From NCBI GenBank assembly GCA_964270895.1, contig OZ185447.1: a stretch of DNA of 64,000 bases. One strand, given 5' to 3'. The stretch comes from Podarcis filfolensis (taxonomy: Eukaryota). Below the pieces are notes generated by a model. That model did no database searches, was not told the origin of the DNA, and saw nothing but the letters and a program-made list of their open reading frames with translations. Of this stretch, positions 46,730 to 62,999 are shown one piece after another. Both the position numbers and the translations under genes were made by a program. Position 1 is the stretch's first letter. Each line of letters opens with the position of its first letter.

Positions 46730-46875
46730 NNNNNNNNNNNNNNNNNNNNNNNNNNNNNNNNNNNNNNNNNNNNNNNNNNNNNNNNNNNNNNNNNNNNNNN
46801 NNNNNNNNNNNNNNNNNNNNNNNNNNNNNNNNNNNNNNNNNNNNNNNNNNNNNNNNNNNNNNNNNNNNNNNNNNN
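46730..46875. other. Assembly gap (146 N)
   Basis: N run; covers the acceptor and an inferred 11 nt of MVP exon 7. Confidence 0.99.
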
Positions 46876-49668: not shown

Positions 49669-49806
49669 NNNNNNNNNNNNNNNNNNNNNNNNNNNNNNNN
49701 NNNNNNNNNNNNNNNNNNNNNNNNNNNNNNNNNNNNNNNNNNNNNNNNNNNNNNNNNNNNNNNNNNNNNNNNNNNNNNNNNNNNNNNNNNNNNNNNNNNN
49801 NNNNNN
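49669..49806. other. Assembly gap (138 N)
   Basis: N run; covers the acceptor and an inferred 12 nt of MVP exon 10. Confidence 0.99.
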
Positions 49807-58650: not shown

Positions 58651-58676
58651 AATAAAATAAATTATCTTCCATGCAG

Positions 58677-58799
58677 GCAAAACTACTCCAGGGCCTGGGC
58701 ATTCAATCCACACTCATCACAGATGGTTCTTCCCCTATCAACCTTTTCACAGCTGCAGGAGGATTGTTGGGGATTTTGCCCAAGCCTTCTGAGACCTGA
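58677..58799 (+). CDS. MVP: MVP exon 17, terminal ([40 protein letters not shown])
   Basis: ccatgcag| acceptor, TGA 58797-58799; summed CDS 2532 nt = 843 aa + stop, using inferred starts for the two gapped exons. Confidence 0.94.
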
Positions 58800-58935
58800 T
58801 AGATCCTGGAGATGGATGCTTCCCTTCCGGATGAAAGCTTTCTTTAAGTACCTTTGCAAACAACATAGAATGTAATAATTTCCCCAGGCCATCGGAGCCT
58901 CCTTTGAATGTGCCTTTTTTTGTGTACAAGTATAC

Positions 58936-58941
58936 AATAAA
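58936..58941 (+). terminator. MVP: MVP poly(A) signal
   Basis: AATAAA 137 nt after the stop codon. Confidence 0.8.
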
Positions 58942-59147
58942 CACTGAAGCAATCTATTCTATGTAATTTCCTTACTCATTTTCATTTAAAGTATGGAGTT
59001 GTCATATTGTGGGAACATTGATCCTGGGTTTGTTGGGGGGTGGTGGGAAGAATCTTGGCTTTAAAGTGAAGGAGGGAGTGTTGGTCAGAGATGGGAGGCA
59101 CATCCATTGTGAGGTCATAGAAAGTGGGTGTGGCCAGGAGAGCAGCT

Positions 59148-59241
59148 ATGCTGAACAGAGGGCAATTTCTGCTACTCCAGCTCCTGTACACTTTTACAAA
59201 TCTCTCCAAGCTGATCCTGAGTAGTCCTCGGCTTGTGACAG
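59148..59241 (+). CDS. FIMP1: Candidate FIMP1 exon 1, signal-peptide-like (MLNRGQFLLLQLLYTFTNLSKLILSSPRLVT)
   Basis: ATG with G at -3, hydrophobic core, donor ACAG|gtgaac in phase 1, matching the phase-1 acceptor at 60227. No recognisable sequence identity to the mammalian exon, so assignment is by fit only. Confidence 0.4.
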
Positions 59242-59310
59242 GTGAACACAGGTCTTCCTCCACTGGGCCTCCTTCCACCCCACTCATCCCCAGCAGCAGG
59301 GAGTGCTGCA

Positions 59311-59490
59311 GAAGTGACCATGGCTCAGTGCTATTCCTTTCAGGCGGAAGATCCCAGGTTCAATTTCTGCATCTCCCGTGAAAAGGGTCCGGAGTAGATG
59401 ATGGGGAAGACCTTCCAGCTGAGATGCTGGAGAGCTGCTGCCAGTTGGGGTAGACAATACTGATCTAGGTTTAAGGCTGCTTCCTAGACC
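59311..59490 (+). mobile_element. Squam3-like SINE
   Basis: catggctcagtg...cccaggttcaatttctgcatctcc...gagagctgctgccagttggggtagacaatactga...aaggctgcttcct. Confidence 0.7.
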
Positions 59491-60226
59491 TTACCTATGA
59501 ACCCTGGGATGTTTCATCTGGCTGTGTGAAGGGTCTCTCCACAGTATAATTTCGACCCTGGGCATTTCCACGCTACTCGTTTTAAACTGCTTTAATTGGA
59601 AGCCATAACAGGGAGTCCTTGGATTCTGATCTAGAAATGTGTCAACAATCTTGCATTATTTTTATATGGCTAGAGATGGTTCCAGCCCTGAACCAACCAA
59701 GTTAAGGCCCTTTGAAACTACATGTTATACTTGTTGAAGTGATATAGTTACTGCCAAAATTCCCCATTACCACAGTAGCTTCCAAATAGGTTCTCAGTGG
59801 AGATTATCGTCCCAATAAGGTTCTGATGATGTTGGATTGCTGAGGTCTCTTTCCTTCTCCACGTTCATCTTGCAGCACAGATTGTAGCAGGAAACATTTT
59901 CTCCTTTTTAACTTCCTCTCTTGCCCAAGCAAAGTAAAGGGCTGTGCGGGGCAACTGTTTGCGAGGCCAAAAGGAGTTTGCGGTGGGCTGTGTGGGGCCT
60001 AAATCAGGGCTACGATAAAGCATTAGCATTGTGTGGCTGGCTGGAAGAGAAATATTCATTGCTGCTGCAATGCAAGGGCGTGACTGTCCATGGAACAGGA
60101 AATTAGTAGCAAATGTTTCTTGGAAAACAGATTTTTGTGTGTGCTTGCGTTTGTAATGAGGTAAATGGACTAAGCACAGGAATGCTAAAAGCACCCACTG
60201 ATGGGAGGTGCTTTTGGGGCCCACAG

Positions 60227-60370
60227 CTCGTGCAGGAAACCCGGGGAATGCCACCGAGGCGGATTTGTCCCGGCATCAGCCGCTCTGGTTTGATTATCCC
60301 GACACAGATGAGAAGAAGATCCTTGCTGTTTACAAGCTCATTGGAGAGCAGCCTGAGTATATTCCCCCAA
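60227..60370 (+). CDS. FIMP1: FIMP1/C16orf92-like exon 2, ectodomain (A-RAGNPGNATEADLSRHQPLWFDYPDTDEKKILAVYKLIGEQPEYIPP)
   Basis: cccacag| ... A|gtgagt, phase 1 to 1; WFDYPDTDEKKILAVYKLIGEQP aligns with recalled human FFDYPDSDQARLLAVAQFIGEKP; lies next to TLCD3B as in human. Confidence 0.8.
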
Positions 60371-60439
60371 GTGAGTCCCCTTGCCACTCCTGTCTCTTGA
60401 CCCTCTCTCAAACGCTCCCTCCCCAATAGCACCTGCAGG

Positions 60440-60595
60440 GGAGGGGGCTGAGCACAGCCTTTGCAGGCACCAGGTCCCAGCAGGTTTAATCCCTGGCATC
60501 TCCAGGTAAGAGCTGGGAAAGACCCAGAGCGCCACTGATGGCCTGAGTTGACCATATTAGGCTAGCTGGACTAATGGCCTGATTCCCCCTGCTCT
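60440..60595 (+). mobile_element. Squam3-like SINE in FIMP1 intron 2
   Basis: ggtcccagcaggtttaatccctggcatctccaggtaagagctggga...ggactaatggcctga. Confidence 0.6.
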
Positions 60596-60732
60596 ATGCC
60601 TAACCTCTGCTCTCCTCCCTTTGCAGAATGATTCAGGGCTGCTTTGGGCTTCCTCCTCCTTGCCCTAGCTGTGCTCTAGCCTTGCCCTATTTCCCCGTGA
60701 CAACCAACCCTCCTCTTCTCTGCCCCCTGCAG

Positions 60733-60820
60733 GTTCATTCCCTCACCAGCTGCGTTATATCCTAGTGGGATCCATTATACTCATCCTGCTGTTCTTCCTC
60801 TATCAGATCATATCGAAAGT
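60733..60820 (+). CDS. FIMP1: FIMP1-like exon 3, transmembrane (S-SFPHQLRYILVGSIILILLFFLYQIISK-V)
   Basis: ctctgccccctgcag| ... GT|gtacgt, 88 nt, phase 1 to 2; ILVG...FFLYQ parallels recalled human HILVGLLVVAFFFLLFQ. Confidence 0.75.
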
Positions 60821-60966
60821 GTACGTGTCATTTTGGTTGGTGTATGTTATGCTGCAAGTATTCTCCCTGCCTCCTTATTGCCTTTGGATATCATTATTTA
60901 CTCCCACCTCCATGGATGAAATGACACCCCCTCCCCTTCTTCTTCTTCTTCCGCAATTTCATTCAG

Positions 60967-60994
60967 GATCTTCAAGAAGTCAAATGCTGGATAA
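60967..60994 (+). CDS. FIMP1: FIMP1-like exon 4, short cytoplasmic tail (V-IFKKSNAG*)
   Basis: tttcattcag| acceptor, phase 2, TAA 60992-60994; compare recalled human (I)NFQKGA*. Confidence 0.65.
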
Positions 60995-61060
60995 ACATCC
61001 AGGTGATCAGCAGATACGGCTCTGTAGCCAGCCAACCACTCTTTGTCTTTTTCTCTGTTC

Positions 61061-61066
61061 AATAAA
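61061..61066 (+). terminator. FIMP1: Poly(A) signal of the FIMP1-like gene
   Basis: AATAAA 67 nt after the predicted stop. Confidence 0.65.
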
Positions 61067-62400
61067 AGGCTATTGAATGAGGGGTTCTTTTGCGATTGGT
61101 GTGATGTGCCAATGGAAAACCAAAGGGGGAAGGGGAGCTGGGATTGGAAGGTTTTGGTTTATGGGGCACACGAGGGCTTAAACAGCAGACAGACCTAAGT
61201 TCAGGACTGCGAGCGGCCTGTGGAAGGCTTAGCAGGGAGAAGTAAGAAAGACACACATTGGCCCTCTGCTGGCATTAGATAAAGGCTCCTTTAATACTTT
61301 TGCAGACCTCAGGTTATAAATACAGCCCGCCCGCCCCCTATTTACAGCTGGATCCCTGCCCCATGGAATGGGTGTTCCTAGGAGGGAAGAGGGAAGGGGT
61401 TGGTGTGCCAAACAGAGGAGGAGGTGGAGGCAAGAGGCTTGGTTATTGCTAGGTGGAGGGAGGGGTGGGTGCATGTTAGGAAGCACACCTCTTGGAACCT
61501 TCCCAGTGCAAGGGGATACATTTTATACAGCATTTGGGGGTTTTCTGGGCAGGTGGCATCACAGTAATACTGAAGATCACTTGCAATTTAGCAGCATCCA
61601 AAAATTCCAGGGTGTTTCCCTATCAGCTACCCTACAACAATTCCTAATTCTGCTGATAGAACCCCTAACAATACAGTGTGAGGAAATCCAGACTATTTCC
61701 CTGCCCCTTTTAATAATAGCTGTGATACTGTGATTCTATGGATAATAGTATAGAAAAGCCCCCGTTGTCTCTCTTCCCTACCTCCCCACCCCCACCACTA
61801 GCATCTCTCTCTGTTCCCAAGAAACAGCACCACCCCACCCAAATAACTGAGTTGTCTCCTTGCCTAGTATGGGCTCAGGTAGTCCTGGGGTGCTCACAGC
61901 ATTTTGTGGAAATAAATAGCACATATATTATTTGGGGGGGGTGATTTGCGAGAGCCCCTAACACACTAGAGATGCCTTGTTCTTATCTTGCAGCCTCAAA
62001 TAAACTTCATCCATGTACCCTGTTCTCAGCCCTCCTATATAACCACTGGCCTGAAAGTCCCTCTGTAAAAGAATCATCATATATATATATATCCCTTTGG
62101 TTTAGGACTCTACCCCCATCCCCGCCCCCAAGGAGTTTCAAAATACTGAGTGTTGCCATATTAGAGGGCTGCCTTTAGCAAAGGAACCCCACACTGCACC
62201 AAAGGACTATTGTCTTTGTCCCTTCCGAATACTTCACTGGAACCCCCCGCCCCCCGCAATGCCTTTCCAGGCCTCCCCAAATCCCTTTTGGCCTAGGAGC
62301 CCACTCCCCCAATCCATCCAGTCCCTCCCATACCCCAATAAATAAATAAGTTAGAGGAAATGTGGTCTGTCCGTCTGTGGCTGAGGAGGGAGAGGTATCA

Positions 62401-62999
<599 letters not shown>

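Follow-up and report, generated by a model that had tools for sequence, protein, structure and literature searches.

We analyzed a 64,000-nt window of lizard DNA, and found that the stretch at 59148-61066 on its plus strand is, with high confidence, the gene for FIMP (fertilization-influencing membrane protein, the C16orf92 orthologue) of a Podarcis-like lacertid lizard. The gene had four coding exons with intron phases 1/1/2 and GT..AG at all splice sites, which together gave a protein of 117 residues (31+1+47+1+28+1+8). The coding part of exon 1 (59148..59241, plus strand) began with an ATG that had a G at position -3, consisted of 31 codons and one base (phase 1 out) and ended at the donor G|GTGAAC. 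Its 31-codon peptide, MLNRGQFLLLQLLYTFTNLSKLILSSPRLVT, had a basic start followed by the hydrophobic core FLLLQLLYTF, which scored 1.8 on the Kyte-Doolittle scale over 9 residues, and this hydrophobic N-terminus is presumably a signal peptide. Exon 2 (60227..60370, plus strand; 47 whole codons, phase 1 in and phase 1 out) lay between the acceptor cccacag|C and the donor A|GTGAGT. It encoded the ectodomain, with an N-A-T sequon, a WFDYPD loop and then a DEKKILAVYKLIGE helix; besides the sequon, its peptide contained the segments WFDYPDTDEKKILAVYKLIGEQP and LWFDYPDTDEKKILAVYKLIGEQP. Exon 3 (60733..60820, plus strand; 28 whole codons, phase 1 in and phase 2 out), with the acceptor ccctgcag|G and the donor GT|GTACGT, encoded the juxtamembrane FP..LRYILVG and then a single transmembrane helix; its codons ended in a hydrophobic run, and the hydrophobic 19-residue stretch ILVGSIILILLFFLYQIIS had a mean Kyte-Doolittle value of 2.58. 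The coding part of exon 4 (60967..60994, plus strand; acceptor cattcag|G) encoded a short basic tail, (V)IFKKSNAG, which is predicted to be cytoplasmic, and ended with a TAA at 60992-60994. The 3' UTR (60995..61066, plus strand) ran through an AATAAA at 61061-61066. A preliminary description of this DNA had proposed three compatible exons with clean splice sites and a downstream AATAAA, encoding an ectodomain with the N-A-T sequon, one transmembrane helix and a short basic tail. Every one of these elements was present at these positions. Runs of N occurred in the window at 46730-46875 and 49669-49806.

The identity of the family was assessed exon by exon. Exon 2 alone matched the Pfam FIMP family (PF17672) over profile positions 55-88 with an E value of 1.7e-6 and 28.5 bits, the curated cut-off of the family being 25 bits. 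Exon 3 aligned with profile positions 101-121 (E 0.16), collinear after exon 2, while exon 1 had no match in Pfam, as expected of a leader peptide. When exon 2 was compared by BLASTP with a 132-aa primate FIMP, 14 of 26 residues were identical (E 9e-10); exon 3 alone gave no significant pairwise match to the same protein (E 36). The elements F/W-F-D-Y-P-D, ILA, IGE.P, ILVG and LxQ were conserved from lizard through primate, and the exon 2 protein was 94-100% identical to the public Podarcis FIMP models. Taken together, the Pfam E value of exon 2 and the recovery of two of the three exon junctions in contigs of related lizards (see below) place the gene call beyond chance. The alignment with human C16orf92 that had been proposed earlier is upheld, and the human motifs quoted there agreed with primate sequences. 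Since the squamate gene is an orthologue of FIMP/C16orf92, the FIMP gene is older than the mammal-sauropsid split, as the preliminary description had also reasoned. Two long antisense ORFs (59865-60251 and 60103-60552) were dropped as they had no family match, and a bacterial-type promoter scan of the 200-bp gap upstream of FIMP was set aside as irrelevant to a vertebrate.

The mouse gene, Fimp (4930451I11Rik), has four exons with the transmembrane segment encoded by exon 3, and its transmembrane form, located at the equatorial segment of sperm, is a type I protein whose signal peptide is cleavable (PMC7196805). The same primary paper presented FIMP as conserved in mammals, and reported that sperm of Fimp-knockout mice do not fuse (PMC7196805), in agreement with the earlier statement that mouse Fimp is needed for sperm-oocyte fusion. 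We found that the lizard gene shares with mouse FIMP and human C16orf92 the four exons with the transmembrane segment in exon 3 and the layout of hydrophobic leader, short ectodomain, one transmembrane helix and short basic tail. Also shared were the xFDYPDxD...ILA...IGExP core, the ILVG at the start of the transmembrane helix and the adjoining FAM57B/TLCD3B gene. On the other hand, the lizard motif starts with W and not F and has L for F85 and Y for F93; the N-terminal part of the ectodomain could not be aligned, and the upstream neighbour was MVP, not DOC2A. The alternative isoforms also differ, with intron 3 retained in the lizard and exon 3 skipped in the mouse.

According to a 2026 cryo-EM preprint, FIMP binds a conserved basic face of TMEM95 through a loop (62-75) and a short helix (76-86). 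In that structure F69, D70 and Y71 of FIMP form hydrogen bonds while V82, F85 and I86 pack hydrophobically, and each of the substitutions F68A, F69A and Y71A abolished TMEM95 binding. TMEM95 was described there as older than FIMP, with the distribution given in a phylogenetic figure. FFDY occupies positions 68-71 in the 132-aa primate protein, and the residue numbering of the preprint therefore transfers to it. Between lizard and primate FIMP, residues F69, D70, Y71, D73, V82, I86 and E88 were identical, and F68>W, F85>L and F93>Y were conservative changes. FFDY read WFDY in every squamate and turtle sequence retrieved. Judged by this alignment, the WFDYPD loop and the DEKKILAVYKLIGE helix of exon 2 appear to correspond to the TMEM95-binding region of human FIMP. 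Neither exon 2 nor a squamate profile found a solved FIMP chain in the PDB, and the motif comparison thus draws on the preprint text and on the primate sequence with matching numbering. In an AlphaFold model with a mean pLDDT of 66, the P. lilfordi orthologue had an N-terminal helix, a disordered stretch that included the motif, a helix at 59-70 and a transmembrane helix at 82-115 with pLDDT >90 in its core. In this model the loop followed by helix 59-70 mirrors the loop-plus-helix of human FIMP at 62-86.

We also examined the genes on either side. The last exon of MVP (major vault protein) lay at 58671..58943 on the plus strand and ended ~200 bp before the FIMP ATG; over this exon the window was 95-96% identical to the P. 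raffonei locus. An upstream gene on the same strand encoding an 843-aa protein with Vault/MVP_shoulder domains was present in all five related loci, and the MVP exon contigs of all four sequencing runs began at 58671, preceded by identical foreign (spliced-on) letters. Downstream, the terminal coding exon of a TLC-domain gene was found at 62401..62754 on the minus strand (Pfam PF03798, E 4e-12, profile positions 113-198 of 198). In relatives a TRAM_LAG1_CLN8 gene of 278-300 aa lies on the opposite strand ~1.4 kb after FIMP, and from its position there the convergent gene of the window is probably TLCD3B/FAM57B. The order MVP > FIMP > < TLC gene was common to the window and to the five annotated squamate loci, so that the convergence with TLCD3B noted earlier was recovered. 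A review of human 16p11.2 lists DOC2A, C16orf92 and FAM57B in sequence, with MVP within the same interval; the lizard loci thus keep the TLCD3B side of the human order DOC2A-C16orf92-FAM57B but have a different gene upstream. A repeat search with 58900-61300 and with a 22-mer from an alternative first exon of P. muralis found no second copy in the window. Many foreign contigs touched 59419-59468 and 60481-60523, giving the impression, and only that, that this alternative first exon may lie in an interspersed repeat.

Public models were sought by a word search scoring exon 2, by a search with a public lizard protein and by a profile of seven squamate proteins. NCBI and UniProt held FIMP models in at least 10 squamate genera and three turtle genera, most of them named FIMP or C16orf92 homolog, as well as in many mammals. 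Models named FIMP came from P. raffonei, Zootoca vivipara, Hemicordylus capensis and Sceloporus undulatus, while 'C16orf92 homolog' was the name given in Pogona vitticeps and Anolis carolinensis; P. muralis had models under both 'uncharacterized protein C16orf92 homolog' and 'fertilization-influencing membrane protein'. Further squamate models were those of Varanus komodoensis, Phrynocephalus forsythii and the snake Pantherophis guttatus, and the turtles were Malaclemys terrapin, Lepidochelys olivacea, L. kempii and Caretta caretta. The three protein searches turned up no model from the window's own genome, and no locus came up when the Sceloporus model was looked up exactly. A counterpart of the same structure was the P. 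lilfordi protein CAI5790915.1 (117 aa, 'hypothetical predicted protein', a record without a gene name), which had the same four exons, phases and length. It was identical to the window in exons 3 and 4 and differed at eight residues, of which exon 1 held five and the N-terminal part of exon 2 the other three. RefSeq has FIMP models from the same locus in P. raffonei (136 aa), P. muralis (123/125 aa) and Zootoca vivipara (92/168 aa), and these shared exons 2 and 3. In P. raffonei the protein encoded by exon 2 was identical to that of the window, and the 136-aa form used a second donor 57 nt further on, where P. raffonei has GT and the window GG. In the P. muralis and Zootoca RefSeq models the conserved exon 1 was absent, intron 3 was read through, or both. 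The four-exon model of the preliminary description agreed better with Hemicordylus X1, Pogona X2 and the P. lilfordi protein, and is an improvement on several RefSeq lacertid models. The gene had been described earlier as hidden in a squamate; this did not hold, because public models including CAI5790915.1 with the same exon structure already exist. Squamate and turtle FIMP is already named in public annotation, and the gene in the window is a correct, ordinary gene call. Likewise, the origin of FIMP before the mammal-sauropsid split was rightly deduced, yet is already contained in the databases.

Among runs recorded as RNA, none contained the stretch. Transcript evidence came from contigs of four small runs that were guessed to be RNA; they belonged to three studies on two related organisms, with tissue unrecorded. 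Their behaviour was RNA-like in that the exon 2 contig (60225-60372) had a depth of 365 in run X1 and 352 in run X2, as against 11-13 for intron contigs. The joint 60370>60733 (GT..AG) was present in X1, X2 and X5 (three runs, two studies), and the joint 60820>60967 (GT..AG) in X2 only, at a depth of 248, where the contig extended past the stop to 61033. FIMP was thus shown to be transcribed and spliced in relatives, and both of the junctions singled out earlier for checking were seen.

The first exon had a different kind of evidence. An upstream coding exon is needed, since exons 2-4 contain no methionine, and what points to 59148..59241 as that exon is its conservation in squamates. Among the lacertids, its ATG, donor and phase were kept in all five, and the intact exon was present even in the two species (P. 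muralis and Zootoca) whose RefSeq models ignore it. Hemicordylus had the same four exons with phases 1/1/2, and aligned with the first 31 residues of its FIMP X1 model, the exon 1 peptide of the window had 55% identities and 84% positives; comparable N-termini begin the Pogona, Phrynocephalus and Pantherophis models. We considered whether the gene is real but transcripts start elsewhere, exon 1 at 59148 not being the true first coding exon. Contig depth was zero over 58976-59257 in all four runs, compared to 365 at exon 2, and two RefSeq pipelines picked different starts, namely an ATG at the equivalent of 59321 in P. muralis and an ATG just upstream of exon 2 in Zootoca. However, a hole of this kind in contig cover proves nothing, the Zootoca start codon reads GTG in the window, and the alternative P. 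muralis N-terminus has no hydrophobic core. With the methionine-free exons 2-4 and the conservation described above, a different first exon is unlikely. The candidate exon 1 of the preliminary description, with its 117-residue product, stood on squamate conservation and gained no support from the RNA contigs.

A second alternative concerned the C-terminus, namely that the main product retains intron 3 and has a long C-terminus (VYVSFWLVYVMLQ...), the IFKKSNAG tail being minor. The X1 contig with the exon 2-3 joint continued from exon 3 through intron 3 to 60948 at a depth of 127 and left exon 4 uncovered, indicating that an intron-3-retaining form also exists. The frame in the window was open to 61073, and the P. 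muralis, Zootoca and Varanus models in RefSeq or Ensembl extend into intron 3. Against this, the spliced joint at depth 248 in X2 came from the same organism as X1, and the read-through tails of Zootoca and Podarcis went out of frame with each other after ~35 residues. Moreover, the exon 4 tail of the window was identical in the other four lacertids and near-identical in Anolis, where the model ends in VLFKKSNAG, and mammalian FIMP has a short basic tail as well. It is hence improbable that the retained form is the main product, and we take the spliced IFKKSNAG tail as the C-terminus of lizard FIMP.

We then compared the locus among lizards. The DNA of the window was 95.8% identical to the P. 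raffonei locus and 94.5-94.7% identical to those of P. lilfordi and P. muralis. None of the four exons was disrupted in P. raffonei, P. lilfordi, P. muralis or Zootoca, and each of these species also kept the ATG, all splice sites and the stop; between the window and Hemicordylus, exons 1-3 could each still be aligned while the remainder of the gene could not. Pairwise dN/dS among the five lacertids, from Nei-Gojobori counts summed exon by exon with the three split codons left out, was 0.17-0.65. Exons 3 and 4 had no non-synonymous changes at all. For exon 1 alone the ratio was near 1, and within Lacertidae exons 1 and 2 were conserved no better than the introns; the replacements in exon 2 all preceded the LWFDYPD motif, except for T/S and V/I. 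These results, which answer the earlier call for lacertid dN/dS and revealed no frame breaks, showed that in lacertids purifying selection acts on an intact gene. A fast N-terminal part with a fixed core is the usual picture for a reproductive protein. A decaying or functionless relic that still resembles FIMP is very improbable, for although exons 1 and 2 diverge at the pace of introns and the literature treats FIMP as mammalian, neither frame breaks nor lost splice sites occurred in the five lacertids, exons 3-4 were free of non-synonymous changes with an overall dN/dS of 0.17-0.65, the core of the motif has not changed in squamates or turtles since they split from mammals, and spliced transcripts were abundant.

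By analogy with mammals, spermatids would make lizard FIMP, and it would enter the acrosomal or equatorial membrane as a type I protein. Its WFDYPD loop and the amphipathic helix (DEKKILAVYKLI) could then clamp onto the conserved basic face of TMEM95, and the TMEM95-FIMP pair so formed may be needed for fusion of the sperm and egg membranes. The FIMP residues that hold TMEM95, shown in 2026, were kept in squamates and turtles with W replacing the first F, and this retention supports an origin of TMEM95-FIMP before the mammal-sauropsid split. Our limited search surfaced no bird or crocodilian FIMP model, a pattern that would be compatible with a loss in archosaurs. We tentatively suggest, giving it a little less than an even chance, that TMEM95-FIMP is an amniote-wide fertilisation module with a fixed WFDY in squamates and turtles, and that the reptile protein was overlooked as a type I sperm membrane protein because its signal-peptide exon is hidden in several RefSeq lacertid models. 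Public annotation and the phylogenetic figure of the 2026 preprint already imply an origin of TMEM95-FIMP before the split. The gain from the present locus is modest: a small, fast-evolving four-exon gene was recovered correctly from raw sequence at the first stage of reading. The cleanest lacertid model combines the conserved exon of the putative signal peptide with the spliced IFKKSNAG tail, both of which were missed by some RefSeq models (P. muralis and Zootoca).

We found that a contig of X1, one of four public runs (presumably of RNA) from two related lizards, extends from FIMP exon 3 (60733-60820) into intron 3 (60821-60966), covering 60733-60948 at a depth of 127. A FIMP transcript form that keeps intron 3 thus exists in a related lizard. 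Past exon 3, the read-through frame in the window adds 85 codons and stays open to 61073, and intron-3 read-through tails are also present in RefSeq/Ensembl FIMP models for P. muralis, Zootoca and Varanus. The start of the tail looks similar (VYVSFW vs MYVSPW in Varanus); after the first residues, the frame is not conserved between Zootoca and Podarcis.

In P. raffonei, the 136-aa RefSeq model splices exon 1 at a second donor, agcagca|GTgagt, located 57 nt 3' of the first (positions 10151-10153 of L001, the P. raffonei locus). Since its counterpart in the window (59298-59300) has GG instead of GT, the longer P. raffonei-type form is impossible here via a canonical donor. The P. muralis RefSeq alternative first exon has its ATG at the equivalent of 59321 and its donor at 59387/59388, and sits ~30 bp upstream of a short patch in intron 1 (59419-59468). 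This patch and another in intron 2 (60481-60523) attracted many unrelated contigs, which had loose ends or formed false joints linking the two; both are probably pieces of an interspersed repeat.

On the upstream side, the final exon of the major vault protein gene (MVP; 58671-58943, + strand) was covered by contigs in all four runs, with depth in X5 and X6 far above that in the others. Only ~200 bp separate the end of this exon from the FIMP ATG, which leaves room for no more than a very compact FIMP promoter, unless the promoter overlaps the 3' end of MVP. The MVP gene region also includes two runs of N, at 46730-46875 (146 bases) and 49669-49806 (138 bases).

Downstream of FIMP, a minus-strand contig of X1 at 61270-61400 (depth 476) lies ~1 kb past the coding exon of the convergent TLC-domain gene (62401-62754) and may represent the 3' UTR of that gene, which would then extend to ~200 bp or less from the FIMP poly(A) signal (61061-61066).
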